Program-made: the position numbers and the translations under genes
Part shown: positions 1 through 9,900 of the stretch, piece after piece
How positions within the stretch are numbered: position 1 is the first letter of the stretch
Layout: each line of letters begins with the position of its first letter
Notes under the pieces: model-generated
What the model was told of the DNA's origin: nothing
Database searches by the model: none
What the model saw: only the letters and a program-made list of their open reading frames with translations
NCBI GenBank assembly: GCA_054661495.1
Contig: BAAFSQ010000341.1
Coordinates: 1 to 9,900 of the forward strand
DNA: 9,900 bases
Source of the DNA: Zygophlyctis sp. KS116
Lineage: Eukaryota > Fungi > Chytridiomycota
Reading direction: 5' to 3'

Positions 1-391
1 TGCTTAATAGATTAAATCAATAGGTAGCAACAATCAGCGGATCTACTCTTGGACGAATCTGGAACTCAGGATTAGTATGATTCATTCGTCCAAGAGTAGA
101 TCTGCTGATTGTTGCTACCTAACTAAAACAATTCAAATACAATTCAATTTTATTGATCTAATTGGTAAGTATCTGCTTAATAGATTAAATCAATAGGTAG
201 CAACAATTAGCAGATCTACTCTTGGACGAATCTGGAACTCAGGATTAGTAAATGAATCATGAACTAAAACAATTCAAATACAATTCAATTTTATTGATCT
301 AATTGGTAAGTATCTGCTTAATAGATTAAACCAATAGGTATCAAAAATTAGCAGATCTACTCTGGGACGAATCTGGAACTCAGGATTAGTA
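1..391. repeat. Tandem repeat block A, ~141-bp unit (about 2.5-3 copies, probably continuing beyond the window start)
   Basis: TGCTTAATAGATTAAATCAATAGGTAGCAACAAT..GATCTACTCTTGGACGAATCTGGAACTCAGGATTAGTA starts at 1, 174 and 315. Spacing 174->315 is 141 bp. The first unit is lengthened by an inverted segment at 84-121. Confidence 0.95.
21..121. repeat. 38-bp inverted repeat (fold-back) with 25-nt spacer
   Basis: 21-58 TAGGTAGCAACAATCAGCGGATCTACTCTTGGACGAAT is the reverse complement of 84-121 ATTCGTCCAAGAGTAGATCTGCTGATTGTTGCTACCTA with one mismatch. Confidence 0.95.
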
Positions 392-695
392 TATGTGATA
401 TTTTTATACATAGAAACTGATAGATAATTTAAAATATAACCAGATGTAATTTTTAATAAAATTTATTTATGACAATGAGATGCAACAAAAACTACGAATT
501 AGAACCCAGAGCTAACAGTTCCCGATTTTATATATATGTATATAATTAATAAAATGCTATATATTACTTCTGTGTCTTCGCCACATTGTAGGTCTGTGAA
601 TTTTCATTCTCACGTTTCGCGTTTCGAACTTTTAAAAAAGTTTAAATAATTTATATTTATTTGATAATTTGAAGCAGGAAAACTATTTCCTCTTC

Positions 696-798
696 ACTGG
701 TGTAAACCAGTTTTTGCACTAGTGAAAGCTAGTCTATTTCCCTGGTGCAAACCAGTAGATTTCGTGGTGAAAACCACTATTACCCTGGTGCAAACCAG
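696..798 (+). repeat. Array of five short hairpins/palindromic sites (5-6 bp stem, GNAA loop), period 21-23 nt
   Basis: ACTGGT-GTAA-ACCAGT (696-711), ACTAGT-GAAA-GCTAGT (718-733), CTGGT-GCAA-ACCAG (742-755), GTGGT-GAAA-ACCAC (764-777), CTGGT-GCAA-ACCAG (785-798). Confidence 0.85.
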
Positions 799-888
799 TG
801 GATTCTTTATGAATCCAGAATTGTTAGAAGGATGAGCTGAGCTCATTCTAGATCATATCCAAGAACTCAAAAACATCAAAAACATCAG

Positions 889-1124
889 TTCAAATACAAT
901 TCAATTTTATTGATCTAATTTGTAAGTATCTGCTTAATAGATTAAATCAATAGGTAGCAACAATCAGCGGATCTACTCTTGGACGAATCTGGAACTCAGG
1001 ATTAGTAAATGAATCAGGAACTAAAACAATTCAATTTTATTGATCTAATTGGTAAGTATCTGCTTAATAGATTAAATCAATAGGTATCAACAGTCAGCAG
1101 ATCTACTCTTGGACGAATCTGGAA
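889..1124. repeat. Tandem repeat block A' (about 2 more copies of the ~141-bp unit)
   Basis: The same unit restarts at 931 and 1061. Spacing is 130 bp because of an 11-nt deletion of one copy of the internal CAATTCAA duplication. Similarity ends at GGACGAATCTGGAA (~1124). Confidence 0.95.
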
Positions 1125-1296
1125 ACTGTAACAATTTTGAACTCATAAATAGGTTAAAAAGTCTAGATACTTTTGTTTATTTTTAAATGAATTTTATTAG
1201 TTAATGAGTTAGTTGTACAGTCATTTTCTTTACAAACTATAATTAAATGTACTTCACATCTTTGAGATAAATTTAACTGTCATCCAGGAGAAGCGA

Positions 1297-2310
1297 ATGG
1301 TAGGGTTTAAAAAAATGTTTTTTGACACTGTAGATCTTGGTGGACCAGAAAAAAGCAAACATGTGTCTGGATTGCTAGAGAATCGTAACAAAAAATTGGA
1401 ATTGGTGCTTTTATTTGGACTTGGCACTCAAGGTTCGTTCGCTATGGATATGGAAACTAGAAGATGGCGTTATATTCGGATAGATGATGTAAATTTAGTT
1501 TCTTCTGCCTACGTTTGTACTGGTCCTTCTATTCTTTATATTTTTGGAGGATATAGTCAATCTTCCCCTTTGAATATTATTTTCAAGTATGATCACAAAA
1601 CAGAGTCATTGTCAGAAGTATATGTTGAAGGTGAATATCTACCTCCTGCTCTCAGTCAGTCCGCAGCGATTCAGTATCTAGGGGATATATACATTTACGG
1701 TGGAAACACTTATGGCGGTTCCAGTGAATATTCATCAGATATGTATAAATTTAATCTACGGAATAAAATATGGCAGAAAGTGAAACATTATGGTCAAAAT
1801 AATCAGCCTCCCGCCGGAAGATGTGGTCATTCAATGAATATATGGGTCAGAAGTTTAAAAAATAAGACCACTCCGTTTCTCGTTATTTACGGCGGATACG
1901 TGAAGTACAATGAATTATATAATGGTCCTGATACAATTATGCTGTATAACATAAGTAAGAGTCAGTTTTAGTTTACAAATAGGTTCCAATAAGTGGATTC
2001 GACCTCATATTAAGAATTTACTAGGAGTTAATCTGATTCGAGCAGATCATATTGCGCTTGTCCAGGGGTGTAATCTAATTGTTTTCGGTGGTCTAGAAGG
2101 AAATATGAAGGAAATGGACCGCAATAAATATGTTAAGCTATCTCTTGGCGCAACATTCTGCCAGGTAAAAGAACAACTTGTGAATGTACTCCCCAGAGCA
2201 GCTCACTCCGTCTCAGTGGCTTTTAAAGATTCAGTTGCCATTATTTATGGCGGACAAATGAATGGGGAATTTCTCAACGAAACAGTAATTCTAGATTTGA
2301 TTTCTTTCCG
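1297..2310 (+). other. Kelch beta-propeller coding region (six blades) of gene 1
   Basis: Six hydrophobic-GG motifs (the first degenerate), preceded by R-x-x-H-type motifs (GRCGHS, IRADHI, PRAAHS) and followed by Y/F..W. Blade 5 lies in the spliced segment 1983-2104 that the ORF track misses. Confidence 0.88.
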
Positions 2311-3763
2311 ACCTATAAATATAAAGGTCAAGTTGGAGAATGGAAATTTTGTGTGGAGTGCACCTTATGATTTAAAAGACACTCAAAAATACACACTTGT
2401 GATAGAAAATATGACAAATCATGAAACTTTAGAAATCGAAACAAGACGAAGATATGTTTCTGTCACAGAACTAAATTTGATAAACGGAATCAGATATGAA
2501 GCTTACTTAATAATCTTTTTAGAAAGTAAACGTCGTGAAAATGGGCCTATCTATAAGTTCGTTTACAATGGTATATTTAGACTTAGTTCACAATAGACCG
2601 CAATCCGCCTGCTCAAAATTTAAAAGCTGTTGTGTCACAAAATGAATCAGTACAAGTACAATGGGATCGATTTCACGCCGATATAAAATACAGAGTTTTT
2701 TACAGGATTTGGAGTCATCTTAAAATTTCTCGGTATTCCAGCCATAACTATGTTCCAGGGACTTGGAAGGAAATTTGGAATTGGGAAGATATAAAAGAGA
2801 GAGGGATATGTAGACTTGAATTGAATCTCTCTAAATTACCTTCAGATGAACTTTATTCTCTCACTCATGACAAGGAAATAGAATTTGAAGTTGAATCGGC
2901 ACGCTGGGATACCAAATCGTATTCATATGTATTTGTTGGTGTGAATCTTCGTTTAGGGATACGAAAAATCGACGATATTTGTTCGTTTATATTTGTCGAT
3001 CTGATACTTTCCGAATTTTTTAATAGTATCACACTGTACTCTAAGAAATTTTTTTTAAAAGGCATGAAATTTTACATTAACCTTATAGAATGTGAATTAC
3101 AAATTAAAATCAAGGATAAAGAGGATTTCGAAATAGTAAAACGTAGAATCAAAAATGGTACAATGGCAGGCATCTTAGATTTAATGAATGAACGACTCGA
3201 GATATTCAGGATTGACAAATACGAGGATAATGATCTACTTATGAAGTAAATGCTGTGTTTAAGCTAATTTTAGAATGATAAAAATGTATCAGGAGATTTA
3301 TAAAAAACCAACATCAGAAAGACCTGGGATACAATTGCGAATAACAACCTTAAATGGTGCGCCTCAGGTGACTGTTTTTTCAGAGGGAGAGTGGAGAAAA
3401 GGATATAATATAAGAAGCTTGACTGGGAAACTGCAGACAATATCTGCGGAGGAAGAGGAGAGCTTAATGGGCTCAAACGATTTCAGCGTGATAATTTCTA
3501 CTAAGAAAAAAGAGACATCGCTGTTGTTTGGCCCCATTCGGCTCGTGAATCATCACTGTACCAAAAGTAATGCATCTGTATGTTCAATTATGTAACTTTA
3601 GATTTCCATTCATCATCCGATTCTAAGGGAAGTTATACTTGTCGCCACAGAAAAAATAGCCAAAGGAAATGAAATATTGACTTTCTATTCTAAAGACTAT
3701 TTTGGGAAAGACAATCAAGATTGTGATTGCTCATATCATAAAAGGTATTTTCAATGCGGTTAA
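1297..3763 (+). CDS. Spliced gene: Kelch-repeat + 2x FN3-like + Set9/Suv4-20-like SET-domain protein (~786 aa)
   Basis: Exons 1297-1954, 1983-2570, 2597-3245, 3274-3577, 3602-3763 (alternative end: intron 3745-3774, stop at 3808). Each GT-AG junction restores frame between consecutive ORFs. Kelch motifs: VLLFGLG, LYIFGG, IYIYGG, LVIYGG, LIVFGG, IIYGG. FN3-like: FVWSAP..Y.L..L.NGIRYEAYL and PPAQNLKAVVSQNESVQVQWD..YRVFYR. SET: NDFSVIISTKK..LLFGPIRLVNHHC and IAKGNEILTFYSKDYFG.DNQDCDCSYH. Confidence 0.85.
1955..1982 (+). other. Spliceosomal intron, 28 nt
   Basis: GTAAGA...ACAAATAG. Removal gives LYNISSNKWIRP..IRADHIALVQGCNLIVFGG, in frame with ORF 2105. Confidence 0.9.
2571..2596 (+). other. Spliceosomal intron, 26 nt
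   Basis: GTATAT...ACAATAG. Removal gives VYNDRNPPAQNLKAVVSQ, in frame with ORF 2632. Confidence 0.88.
3246..3273 (+). other. Spliceosomal intron, 28 nt
   Basis: GTAAAT...GCTAAT.TTTAG with a branch-like GCTAAT. Joins LLMK to MIKMY (ORF 3275) in frame. Confidence 0.88.
3578..3601 (+). other. Spliceosomal intron, 24 nt
   Basis: GTATGT...GTAACTTTAG, containing the in-frame stop of ORF 3275. Removal restores the SET C-terminal motif and post-SET CxC. Confidence 0.9.
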
Positions 3764-4553: not shown

Positions 4554-7500
4554 ATGATCAGATGCAGTAATTGTAAGAATCAATTTTCTACAAGAAGTGA
4601 GAAAGATCGACACTATCGTGTTTCTCACACAAACATGATCACAGTCGATAAAGTAAAATATTATAGAAATTCTATTACAATGCATTTCGAATGCAAGAAA
4701 TGCAATGGAAGTTATAGAGATCCAAAGAATTTGAAAGAGCACCTAAAAAAAACTCAATGTGCTAAAGAAAACTCTCTTGAAGAAGATGTTACTGAAAAAG
4801 GAACTCCAGTTGTGCAAAGTATGCTTAAGTCTGTGGAGTCACCTCAATCTCACAAATATTCCCAATCTTTGTTGCCATTATCGCAACATTTTTTAACCAG
4901 TAGTATCTCTGTCTTACAAGAAGAAATTCAATCGATGAATTCTGATAATAATACAACAAATAGGCCTAAGGAAAGAATCATGAGTGAACAATTTGAATCT
5001 AATCTGTCTATTGAATCTTATCAAGATCTAGAATCTAGAAAGTTGATACCGGTTCAAAGTACTCAATCTTGGGAAAACAATGTTTCTACTGAATCCTCCC
5101 CAAATCTAGGACAAACACACATCGCCAGTACATCTAAAACTGTCTCGGTGGAATTTTCAGATGATTTAAGAATTAGCCAATTTGATAAAGTTGGTATGGT
5201 TGCTAAACGAATGAGATCTGCAGCAGATGATAATGTTGTGACGCCCAAACAAATGGGTAAAAAAATATGTTCCTCTTCAGAAGCAATATCAAGCATATTA
5301 GATACAAATAATTCTATAGAAATGAAAGATGCGAATCAATCGTTAAATTCTTCTCCATTACAAAGTTTCACTCGTTCTCCCATATTTAAACTTACGGCTA
5401 ATCATTTCTCAAAAGGCAAGAAAGGCTCCATTAAAGGCTGTTGTGAGCCCGGGACCAAAAAAACAAGTAATTTCTAGAAACTTAACTTTAGATAAGAGTG
5501 ACCTAGAGAATAACATATTAAAATTTAATGAGACAGAGCTAATTATCATGTTTAATATGGGTTTATTCAGTTATGTGAATAATGATAGTCAGAGATGGAT
5601 AAAGATTTTATCTTCACACACAATCGAGAGACTGAAGAAAATTAATATAGAAAAAGAAATCATCTTGATAGGTAAAAATAATGTTGCACATCCAAATCTA
5701 AAAAATCTTTTGGTAAAAGACCTTGTGGAAAGAATTTTGGGTCTTATCGATTTAAGTGCAGCTGTCTCGTTTATTGTTAAAAAAGTTGGTCATCATAACC
5801 CGACAAATGAATTTAAAACTATATTTGCAGACCAAAAGGAATACATCAAACGCCATGTTATCAAATTAATCGATAATGTTCAATCTAGTGCATCTTATCG
5901 AAAATCTATGCTGGAGGCCTTGAATGCTTTATCTTTCAATACCGCAGAGGAATGTGACCTTCAAATTAAATTGTTAAAAAAAAAGGTTCCTATCATCTCT
6001 CATATTAAAAAAGAAAATGTGGAAGATGACACGACTATTGATTTGAAGAAAAAAAGTAAATTTAATCATTAAACTTTAGTTTGTGCTTACGCAAATGATG
6101 TTATACATTCTGAAGATGAAACTTCCAACTATTCTTCAGCGCCCCTCTCGCTAGAAGACGAATCTGAAGACTATGACTCTCTTGATGATGAAAATGGTAA
6201 GTGTTTAACAATTTAATCAGCTAGATATATCTGAAGTTTTGAAAGAGATGAAACAGCAGCAATGGCAAGAACAAATACTCGAGGATAAAAAAAAAATAGC
6301 CAATTATATCATTAACACTGATACACAAAAAACAAATTTAACTCAAGGATTATCCTACGAAGAGGTAGCTTTTTTTCTACGGGCGAAGGCGGTTTTCCAT
6401 CCAGCACCAAAAACAGATATCGAGTCGATTACCTTCACAAAATTCGTCCTGAATCTTTATGAATCGTTTGCTTCCCAAGATAATTTCTTTTAAACACACG
6501 TTATTGATGGACGTTTATGGATTTGCAGGATATATCTTTTTCCCCAGGTTACAAATAGATCAAAGGAAATGGTCAAACTATAATAACATGATGATCAATG
6601 ACGATTATCATTTCTTTATTGAAGAATTACTACTACCATGTATTCAAAGACTTAAACCCGATGGGACATTTCCTGATAATGTGAAATGTAAAAATCAATT
6701 CAAAGGAAATAACCGGAACAGTTTTAATGCTATTCAGCTACCTGTAGAAATATTTCATAAGGTTGTACAGGAAATGCGAAAAACCATTTCTTTACAACAA
6801 GACGAAAAAATGGAGCAATTTAAAGATTTTTTTTTTCATTTTCAGTCTATTGGGGTAAAGAATATATACAAGGGTGAAAAGAAAGACACTATTGATAAGC
6901 TTATAAATGTTTTGGAGAACTTTGTAAATGTTGATTGCGACGTAAAGGAATATTATGATATTGGTATCGAATTTTATTATGAAAACCTGGAGGAAAATTA
7001 TACCCTCTTTTGGTCTCAAGATGGAGCTGAGGCTCTTCATAATGGGCTTGATCTTCGTGGTAGTGTCACACGCACGGGTACCATGTACTCCAACGATCTC
7101 TTAGGTATTTTTACCCCGATTATAATATGTAAGGAATGGTCATCAAAAATCCTGACGCTAAAACTACGAACAAAAAATGGATATTCTGTCAAATGTATCA
7201 AGGTTTAAAAAACGCAATACAAACACCAGATAATATAAAGCGGTACGAGCCTCGTGAAGATGATTTTTTGGGGAAAACTCCCAAACATGTTTTTGAATAT
7301 CTAGCTATGGTCAATGGATTTTTAATCGGGAAGAAGGCAGTAAAGAATTACCCGGCCAGGTATGAAATACGAGTAAGAGGTCATAAGACGGCTCTAGCTT
7401 GTCTCGCAAAAGGCGAAAAACCAGATATCAAGTTTCATGTTTCACCTACATATTTAGTTTTAAAGTATTTGAGTCAGATCTCAGACATTTGGAGGTATAT

Positions 7501-9028
7501 TTTTACGAATGCACGCTTAATGCATTGCTCTGGCCCGCTAAGAAGAGATTTCCTAAAAATTATCAGGATCTCACTGTTAAGCCTTTTTAGAGGTTGGGAA
7601 TATGTAACAATCAAAGACAATTCAGTCGAGAAAAAAGATAAAGTTTTTCTTGGTATTCAAGATAGTATAAAAAATTATTCATTCCCATATATAGACTCAG
7701 AATTGGTAGATTTCAAACAATTACGATTTAAAGATGTATTAGACGAAACTCTCAAGTCAAGTTTTGACGAAGATTTACCTTTTGGATCAACAATTCCGGA
7801 TTTTATTGATAAAAATTTAGAGGAAGAGGCATTGCAACTTTACCAATATTTTAGAATGATATGGAATGAAGAACATCCCATTAAAAAGATTGCATATTTA
7901 CTCAATCAATCCGCTCAACAAACTATTTTGAAATCTATTCCAAGCTCGTATATCCGTCAAGTTTCAAAATCCATAAACGGTTATAGTATCTCCGATTTAG
8001 AAATGACTGTAAATTTGCAGATTAATTTTCGAAATCTTTCCTCTATTCATCTATTCGATACTATTTATGCAACCAATCTACATACAACGCATTGGTGGAA
8101 TGCTTCACTACACAACCATTTTTATAGGTATTTTATGAAAATGTTCAAGACCAGAAATACGCCAAAGGTTGCAGATTCATTGGATCTAGAGCTGCAGATA
8201 CTTATATGCGACTGGGAATTTTTTCCCTACATACAAAGTGATCGAATATGGGGCAATTGTGATGCTGAAAAAAATATTCTGAAGGCTTTTGTTGTAGAGG
8301 ATCTTCAGAATACAAAAATAGAACTCGTAAACTCTCAAAAAAAAAAACCACGCGCATTGGATTCTAAAAATATTGCTGAAAGTCTATTTAAATTGTTTTT
8401 ATTAGATATCTGGTCAGATGTAGATCAATCAGTCATGGAATATAGTCGAATTCTTCCCGAGAAAACAAAACTTTCGAGAAATCCTAATTTAACTTTATCA
8501 GATTTAATGGAATCATTTGAACTACAGTTTTTAAAGAAAATTGCTTTTCCGGGTGCGTACGTGAAGGTTACTAAGAAATCCAAAACCTGGAGTCAACGAT
8601 TTGACCATTTTTTTCCTTATCCTGTGGCTAACGAGTGGGATAAATCTCTAATAGGAAAGAAAAAATATGCCCTTAGATGGAGGGAGATAATCGCAGCACA
8701 TGAACAAAAGATTATAGTTAAAGTCATTCCCGAACTTTTCTCTCTTTTTCAAAAGCTAGAATGGTTTCCAAATCATCAAGGATTTCAGTCTTTTTGGAGA
8801 AAAAACAGAACAAGCATACATGACTATGATTTAATAAGGAAAAAAGATTTTGGAAAACAAGTACCGCTTATGGAGGAGAAACAATTACCAGTCATAGATG
8901 ATAGAGTTGTTGAAAAAAGAGCTTACACATCTCCAGTTGCTTATGAAACGATGAATGCTGGAGAATCTCATTCTGACAAAAACCTTAATAAATGGAAAAG
9001 TACCTTATATCCGCCAGAAAAAATGTAA
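4554..9028 (+). CDS. Large spliced gene (~1,450 aa): two N-terminal zinc fingers, Ser-rich linker, acidic patch, uncharacterised core, duplicated Trp-rich C-terminal module; one unresolved frame break (~6450-6493)
   Basis: Exons 4554-5466, 5492-6055, 6080-6196, 6225-7104 (with a +1 frame change or a weak 34-nt intron 6446-6479), 7134-9028; possible extra exon 9054-9180. Fingers: CSNC-x12-HYRVSH and CKKC-x12-HLKKTQC. Confidence 0.7.
5467..5491 (+). other. Spliceosomal intron, 25 nt
   Basis: GTAATT...CTTAAC.TTTAG. Its length (3n+1) converts the frame of ORF 4554 into that of ORF 5443 (KKTNKSDLE). Confidence 0.82.
6056..6079 (+). other. Spliceosomal intron, 24 nt
   Basis: GTAAAT...ACTTTAG. Contains the stop of ORF 5443, and reading continues through an acidic exon (ICAYANDVIHSEDE..DDEN). 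Confidence 0.82.
6197..6224 (+). other. Spliceosomal intron, 28 nt
   Basis: Consensus donor GTAAGT...CAGCTAG. Gives ENDISEVLKEMK, in frame with ORF 6239. Confidence 0.88.
7105..7133 (+). other. Spliceosomal intron, 29 nt
   Basis: GTATTT...ATGTAAG. Joins NDLL-G to MVIKNP (ORF 7136) in frame. Confidence 0.8.
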
Positions 9029-9177
9029 TTTATTTAGTTCGATTTATAACAAGAATTTTCAAATACCCTGTGGAGAGTGGAACCTTTGATCACCAAATAT
9101 ATGCTCAAAGCGCTTTATATAAGTGGTTCTGGGCCTGGACAGGTTGGTACCAACATGTTAGATATATTCTACAGCTA

Positions 9178-9270
9178 TGAAATTTGGCATACATGTTGAT
9201 CATATTGAAGAGAACTTTAGTACCAAATTTCAGGTCAATCGCGTAAAAACTCCCCGAGATAACAGCCTTG
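9178..9270. mobile_element. Helentron/HINE (DINE-1)-like inverted-repeat motif preceding the minisatellite
   Basis: TGAAATTTGGCA (9178-9189) and TACCAAATTTCA (9221-9232) form an 11/12 inverted match, followed by GGTCAATCG..CCGAGATA and then GGAC/AGAC-containing tandem repeats. The family assignment is from recalled resemblance only. Confidence 0.35.
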
Positions 9271-9840
9271 AAGCAAAATCCGGACGCAGACCCTAGTTTT
9301 CCGGACGCAGACCCTACATTTCCGGACGCAAGCCCTAGTTTTCCGGACGCAGACCCTAGTTTTCCGGACGCAAGCCCTACATTTCCGGACGCAGGCCCTA
9401 GTTTTCCGGACGCGCAGGCCCTAGTTTTCCGGACGCAAGCCCTACATTTCCGGACGCAGGCCCTAGTTTTCCGGACGCAAGCCCTAGTTTTCCGGACGCA
9501 GACCCTAAGCAAAATCCGGACGCAGGCCCTAGTTTTCCGGACGCAAGCCCTACATTTCCGGACGCAGGCCCTAGTTTTCCGGACGCAAGCCCTACATTTC
9601 CGGACGCAAGACCTAAGAAATCCGGATGCAAGACCTAGTAATCCGGATGCAAGACCTACATTTCCGGACGCAGACCCTACTTAAACTTCAAAATATAAGT
9701 ATTTTTTTGATTTGTCCAACTTTAAATTCAACTAGACCCTACATTTCCGGACGCAAGACCTAGTAATCCGGATGCAAGACCTACATTTCCGGACGCAAGA
9801 CCTACATTTCCGGACGCAAGACCTAAGAATCCGGACGCAA
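9271..9840. repeat. GC-rich 21-bp minisatellite, ~24 units, interrupted at 9681-9733
   Basis: Unit CCGGACGCA(GA/AG/GG)CCCTA(GTTTT/CATTT), with later variants CCGGA(C/T)GCAAGACCTA. About 19 units at 9280-9680 and about 5 at 9734-9840. Confidence 0.97.
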
Positions 9841-9853
9841 GGTTAGGGTTAGG
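9841..9853 (+). repeat. Short telomere-like tract GGTTAGGGTTAGG
   Basis: About two TTAGGG units directly abutting the last minisatellite unit. Confidence 0.55.
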
Positions 9854-9900
9854 AATTAAGATTTTATTAATTTTTCTTTTTTTAACCAGGTCTTATATTT

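Follow-up and report, generated by a model that had tools for sequence, protein, structure and literature searches.

SET genes have been described in HarbingerS and MuDR transposons and in the proto-Helentron-Pi of Phytophthora; the Helentron SET, which was compared with Clr4, is a stand-alone, intronless ORF (PMC12730594, PMC4067079). Other chromatin-related genes are also associated with transposons: fungal DNA transposons carry TET/JBP, and the Vandal/VANC system of Arabidopsis is anti-silencing (PMC12730594). All SET transposons that we found in the literature belong to oomycetes, and none of them has a SET of the H4K20 type.

The window analyzed here is an entire 9.9-kb contig (C341) of the 12.7-Mb, 1175-contig, AT-rich assembly of Zygophlyctis sp. 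KS116, in which introns are 24-30 nt long. It contains a gene that joins a Kelch propeller and FN3 units to a Set9-derived SET domain, located in a mobile-looking cassette. Like the Phytophthora elements, the cassette would carry a histone-methyltransferase gene as a transposon accessory gene; unlike them, it is not from an oomycete, its SET domain is of the Suv4-20/Set9 type and has been joined to another module captured from the host, and it differs in element class. With the TET/JBP transposons and Vandal/VANC it would share a chromatin modifier or regulator that the element encodes and that may oppose silencing by the host; the enzyme class is another one. The reading that we favor, at slightly better than even confidence, is that of an element-borne, active methyltransferase in which a lost nucleosome anchor has been replaced by the Kelch-FN3 module, and which would bring H4K20 methylation to the chromatin of the element.

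Gene model, domains and parentage of the fusion

The five exons that the sequence-only reading had proposed (Table 1) join into one 786-aa frame whose sole stop is terminal, with four GT-AG introns of 28, 26, 28 and 24 nt; none of 20,000 random 219-codon frames of the same composition was stop-free. That model needs two likely amendments. A fifth intron, of 27 nt, GC-AG and in frame, is probable because a divergent metagenome copy (L015) has a stop-containing GT-AG intron there and an intron of the native set9 gene coincides with it in position and phase; its splicing would give a protein of 777 aa. In alignment with three divergent copies, the start codon at 1315 is more likely than that at 1297. 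An alternative last intron (3567-3601) was discarded because it breaks the frame. Splice sites rest on comparison with relatives; database searches and fold predictions were done exon by exon, and the joined model was used for the frame check and for comparison with three loci.

Table 1. Features of the 9.9-kb window, in nucleotide positions.
Feature	Position	Strand	Basis
Left end, tandem repeats of about 141 bp; the corresponding place in L015 has tandem repeats of unrelated sequence	1-1130		
Clustered GGTG-AAAC hairpin motifs with 75% identity in L015; 4409-4449 holds a similar pair	692-834		
Exon 1: Kelch blades 1-4, start probably at 1315	1297-1954	+	Pfam; alignment with three divergent copies
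Intron, 28 nt, phase 1; position common to L015, L016 and the host C142 Kelch gene	1955-1982	+	
Exon 2: blades 5-6 of the Kelch propeller, then the first FN3-like domain (recognized by eye only)	1983-2570	+	
Intron, 26 nt, phase 1; common to the C142 gene	2571-2596	+	
Exon 3, 5' part: second FN3, with homology to the C142 gene extending to its last strand	2597-2949	+	
Exon 3, 3' part: junction of the fusion, then putative Set9 N-flanking helical region	2950-3245	+	
Probable extra GC-AG intron, 27 nt, in frame; coincides in position with intron 1 of native set9	3062-3088	+	
Intron, 28 nt, phase 2; native set9 has the same position	3246-3273	+	
Exon 4: SET core, with NDFS at 3476, LLFGP at 3521 and VNHHC at 3545	3274-3577	+	
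Intron, 24 nt, phase 0; native set9 has the same position	3578-3601	+	
Exon 5: SET-C and post-SET, with TFYSK at 3680 and CxC at 3722; protein end, no Set9 C-terminal tail	3602-3763	+	
Conserved 92-aa ORF, 51% to L015	3973-4251	+	
Large C2H2-zinc-finger ORF, several frames, candidate mobility gene	4554-9028	+	
Short remnant resembling the start of the exon leading into the Ulp1-like protease in L021/L022	9050-9112	+	
Dispersed repeat with 21-bp tandem arrays, on >10 other contigs; probably a separate insertion	9113-9890		

Pfam confirmed Kelch repeats in exons 1 and 2 (six blades), whose nearest relatives in the PDB are the substrate receptors LZTR1 and KLHDC2/3/10. Two FN3 domains had been proposed to follow the propeller, and the second of these stands: in an AlphaFold2 model of exon 3, residues 1-115 form a seven-strand sandwich (pLDDT about 60-88), its Foldseek matches are FN3 domains and its phmmer matches are FN3-repeat proteins. 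The first gave no Pfam match and no HMM signal, and its FN3-like motifs were recognized by eye only. The assignment of the SET domain to the Suv4-20/Set9 type held, with exons 4-5 matching SUV420H1/H2 far above every other SET protein in the PDB (profile E of 1e-18 for SUV420H, compared to 0.1 for MLL3/4). The Set9 N-helix that follows the junction is weak by score (pairwise E 0.003; rank 1 of 2864 pieces at E 0.26). For the N-flanking four-helix bundle of Suv4-20/Set9, the motif of the first helix matches weakly and the AlphaFold2 model is helical with pLDDT < 50; the assignment is backed by a shared intron just downstream.

The passage from FN3 to Set9 lies at about nt 2950, inside exon 3 (2597-3245), so that the link between the two halves is independent of splicing, as had been pointed out, and it recurs in divergent copies. 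The front half corresponds to the Kelch-FN3-FN3 gene that the host carries on contig C142, which is the only other intact Kelch match in the genome (E 5e-34). The back half matches the host set9 on C83 (E 9e-10); outside the window there is no further intact SET match, and the remaining SET genes of the genome gave none. Both parents are still in the genome, the canonical set9 being separate from the fusion. Alignment between the fusion and the C142 gene extends as far as the last strand of the second FN3, after which the fusion continues with a segment that resembles, at a weak score, the first helix of Set9. The copied span of the C142 gene ends where its second FN3 ends, and that of set9 runs from the N-flanking helix to the post-SET cysteines. 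In position and phase, two of the five introns match the C142 gene and three match set9. Since the fusion retains introns from each parent, the joining took place at the DNA level, and retroposition is rejected. By these comparisons the gene is a DNA-level chimera of two host genes, and its product, as predicted from the joined exons, is a real, single Kelch-FN3-Set9 fusion protein.

The C142 gene (L011 4512-7855) encodes a Kelch propeller with two FN3-like units, followed by a low-complexity linker and then, at the C terminus, a conserved domain. It shares 26-40% aa identity with the fusion over the Kelch and FN3 exons, as well as both intron positions, but has the linker and the conserved C-terminal domain where the fusion has SET. 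This domain is Tudor-like by eye and had no Pfam or PDB match. Syntenic orthologues of the gene occur on two metagenome contigs (L013 and L014), also without SET. The host set9 has a long acidic insert in its N-flanking region, and a downstream exon (L010 3109-3273, minus strand) contains a PWWP-like motif, seen by eye and without Pfam or PDB support.

A Kelch propeller followed by FN3 units had been read as the architecture of Host Cell Factor (HCF). In outline the two do resemble each other, each having a six-bladed propeller and then two FN3-type units, and a true HCF orthologue fused to Set9 could have arisen from an ancestral HCF-Set9 partnership. The Kelch_HCF model, however, gave only 23 bits on exon 1 (cut-off 113) and no match on exon 2, and KLHDC2/LZTR1-type models score better. 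On exon 1 only, the copies of the fusion reach 12-23 bits and the parent gene 40-49 bits against the same cut-off, and a genome scan for Kelch_HCF returned nothing above it. In a small tree of Kelch exons, restricted to those of the genome and the metagenomes, four fusion exons and three parent exons group together against the other Kelch genes of the genome (support 86/96), with the fusion group itself weakly supported. We know of no HCF that carries a SET domain. In all HCF proteins the first Fn3 is split into Fn3n and Fn3c with a spacer between them (PMC6582346), whereas the FN3-like units of the fusion are contiguous and directly follow the propeller. We reject HCF orthology on the sub-cut-off scores, the genome scan and the contiguous FN3 units, and an origin from an HCF-Set9 partnership is largely refuted and, in our view, scarcely credible. 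The Rosetta-stone argument that the sequence-only reading drew from HCF biology also loses its footing, since the front half derives from the host Kelch-FN3-FN3 gene.

Conservation and active site of the chimera

Divergent copies of the gene were found in metagenomes: L015 holds the whole gene (32-57% aa), L016 the part up to and across the junction, L017 the Kelch part, and L019 the junction and SET in decayed form. L018, L020 and L055 are near-identical copies. The junction is conserved in three divergent (L015, L016, L019) and three near-identical (L018, L020, L055) copies, and those intron positions that can be checked are the same. An assembly chimera is ruled out by the presence of the junction on these six independently assembled contigs. 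Since the junction lies within an exon and recurs in three copies at 32-57% aa identity, the fusion is not an artefact of assembly or annotation. Two separate genes were rejected as unlikely, given the junction within an exon and the downstream introns that match set9. The sequence-only reading knew of no described protein with this architecture, and we likewise found no report of a Kelch-FN3-Set9 protein in the literature. When exon 3 was searched against 1.8 billion representatives, the only full-length matches were the contigs described here, and pattern scans of JGI metagenomes with the Kelch exon and the large ORF gave no confirmed relative.

Compared to L015, dN/dS ranges from 0.13 to 0.48, with dS near saturation. 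Compared to the 98%-identical L055 it is 0.39, with 11 synonymous and 15 non-synonymous changes (P 0.017 against neutrality). On these ratios the chimera has been under purifying selection, and gene order is the same in the divergent copies. Exon 5 is the best-conserved part (58-67%). Among L015, L016 and L019, exons 2-3 have a dN/dS near 0.8, and this faster change may reflect relaxed or diversifying selection. L016 and L019, which come from one sample, show 16 non-synonymous differences but a single synonymous one in the second FN3, which could be due either to diversifying selection or to the decay of L019. Decayed copies are found on C385 and L019, and L020 has a 1-nt deletion. Two divergent copies co-occur in each of two samples.

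The SET half was compared with Suv4-20 using the residue numbering of mouse Suv4-20h2, in which the roles of Ser161 and Tyr217 have been described (PMC3874154). Ser161, Asn182, His183, Cys185 and Tyr217 are retained in all three divergent copies (3/3), and the NHxC and YFG motifs are also invariant, in copies that are only about 40% identical. The methyl pocket has changed: Phe191/Trp174/Ala178/Ile181 of Suv4-20 correspond to Ile/Leu/Ile/Val in the window, compared to Phe/Phe/Ala/Val in the native set9. Trp174 is replaced by Leu and Ala178 by Ile in all three divergent copies, while Phe191 is kept in L015 and L019 and is Ile in the window copy. The paired replacement of Trp174 and Ala178 may be compensatory within the pocket, where the methyl group of the substrate sits. 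The RYSS loop near the cofactor, present in the host set9, is unrecognizable in the fusions; by our reading of the chain offsets, this loop holds the cofactor-contacting Ser196 of mouse Suv4-20h1. The fourth zinc ligand is out of register in the fusion.

Two features of SUV420H1 matter for its activity on nucleosomes: a DNA-contacting loop with R257/K258, which is needed for this activity, and C-terminal arginine anchors to the nucleosome acidic patch, which are needed for full activity (PMC10697951). The STRK loop reads S-T-K-K in the window copy, with K-K at R257/K258, and is altered in L015 and L019. The arginine anchors cannot be present because the protein ends just past the post-SET cysteines, by about 10 residues in the window, L015 and L019. 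As the canonical pocket and the C-terminal anchors are both missing, we call the fusion Set9-derived rather than a canonical Set9. It resembles Suv4-20/KMT5B-C and fungal Set9 in SET-I, SET-C and post-SET sequence, in the Ser161/Tyr217-type active site, in a weakly matching N-flanking helix and in the three intron positions common with the host set9. It differs in gaining the N-terminal Kelch-FN3 and losing the C-terminal tail, in its altered Trp174, Ala178, RYSS loop, fourth zinc ligand and (in the window) Phe191, and in its location in a mobile-looking cassette.

A rival reading keeps the element-borne chimera but gives it a non-histone or non-H4K20 target bound by the Kelch propeller, for example a protein of the element or a silencing factor of the host; the methyl pocket remodelled alike in all copies, the missing acidic-patch anchors, the loss of the R257/K258 loop in L015 and L019 and the substrate-receptor nature of the closest PDB Kelch proteins would fit such a target. 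We consider this distinctly unlikely, in that the window copy retains the S-T-K-K loop and H4 recognition by Suv4-20 is mostly main-chain (PMC3874154), so that side-chain changes need not shift the substrate. Improbable, in our estimate, is a pseudo-enzyme or decoy whose SET fold binds H4K20 or SAM, or competes with the host Set9, and blunts silencing without catalysis. Such a role would agree with the lost RYSS loop and fourth zinc ligand and with Ile in place of Phe191 in the window copy, but Ser161, NHxC, Tyr217 and YFG are invariant at about 40% identity and exon 5 is the best-conserved exon.

The cassette and its relatives

The hairpin array (fold z -4.2) has counterparts at L015 467-643 and G000:C128 19192-19228, and its motifs are possible binding sites for the zinc-finger protein of the element. 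The 92-aa ORF has a dN/dS of about 0.2, and a fragment of it is also found on C437; it matched no family. The large ORF of the window contains a deletion of roughly 78 codons with a frameshift at about 6490, and the window copy therefore combines an intact fusion gene with a broken large ORF. Relatives of this ORF occur at L021 225-4188 and L022 46-2986, with a strongly conserved core of about 60-70% aa and a Ulp1-like protease after it. It gave no informative Pfam match, an AlphaFold model with pLDDT 36 and no class in a plasmid search; an Atlas score of 0.77 to RAG1/Transposase_21 is a lead only. We regard the large ORF as a candidate transposase of an unclassified element.

L015 has the same layout as the window, with tandem repeats, hairpin array, fusion gene, 92-aa ORF and C2H2 zinc-finger ORF. 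It overlaps L021, from the same sample, in a tandem repeat (94% over 241 nt), and a join of the two is likely, though not proven. Next on L021 come the large ORF (about 60% to that of the window), the Ulp1-like protease, a second zinc-finger gene and 21-bp repeats. In the window, the exon leading toward Ulp1 appears to be cut off near 9110 by the dispersed repeat. This repeat is non-coding, and a short version that joins both of its ends is present on C385 (L009 3421-3493); the repeat has the look of a distinct, non-autonomous element that inserted itself into the Ulp1 region.

Decayed or deleted pieces of the cassette are scattered over C385, C437 and C137 amid debris of retrotransposons and DNA transposons, and the piece on C385 joins a Kelch fragment to a SET fragment, with stops. 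The assembly contains one near-complete copy, that of the window, which is a whole contig, and neither an empty site nor a target-site duplication or terminal inverted repeat was found. Helitron or Helentron signatures were also sought, and the ORFs of the window and of L021 gave no Pfam match to an HUH Rep or PIF1 helicase. L019 has, in place of fusion exons 1-2 and antisense, a Helitron-Rep-like fragment (2-1019, minus strand) with an HUH motif (Pfam REP_ORF2-G2P, E 0.004).

From this context the cassette is most likely a mobile element. The same genes could also form a host-domesticated, non-mobile cluster, for example a subtelomeric one, in which the chimera serves the host; this would explain one near-complete copy per assembly, the lack of defined terminal repeats or target duplication and the TTAGGG-like words in the end repeats. 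We find such domestication decidedly improbable, as it sits poorly with decayed partial copies amid transposon debris, with a large ORF that is broken in the window copy, with a contig devoid of ordinary housekeeping genes and with two divergent copies per sample, although the latter could represent two species.

A possible re-aimed chromatin writer

In the mechanism that we propose for the mobile cassette, it would be a DNA transposon-like element whose mobility protein is encoded by the large zinc-finger ORF, followed by the Ulp1-like protease in the relatives. The chimera would act as a SAM-dependent lysine methyltransferase, with the Kelch propeller replacing the lost acidic-patch tail of Set9 as an aiming device that binds a peptide of a partner, which could be an element-encoded DNA-binding protein or the host partner of the parent gene. 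H4K20 methylation, possibly with a shifted methyl state, would then be written on the chromatin of the element and might favor its persistence or movement. A bolder version, in which the cassette represents an undescribed class of large eukaryotic mobile elements with a mobility protein outside the known transposase families and a chimeric H4K20 writer, built from two host genes, that the Kelch-FN3 module aims at the element's own chromatin through the zinc-finger protein and the hairpin array, is one that we put forward tentatively, as possible but on balance unlikely.

Out of two host genes, the apparent element has made a domain architecture that is new, and it has maintained this over some 50-60% aa divergence. 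With both parents known and present and their introns matching, the fusion is a clean case of exon shuffling, and the unclassified large ORF could be the sign of a new family of elements. The system allows one to ask whether exchanging the nucleosome anchor for a propeller that binds peptides can re-aim H4K20 methylation, and whether the H4K20 mark benefits a selfish element. Taken together, the locus suggests a selfish element that carries its own re-aimed chromatin writer.
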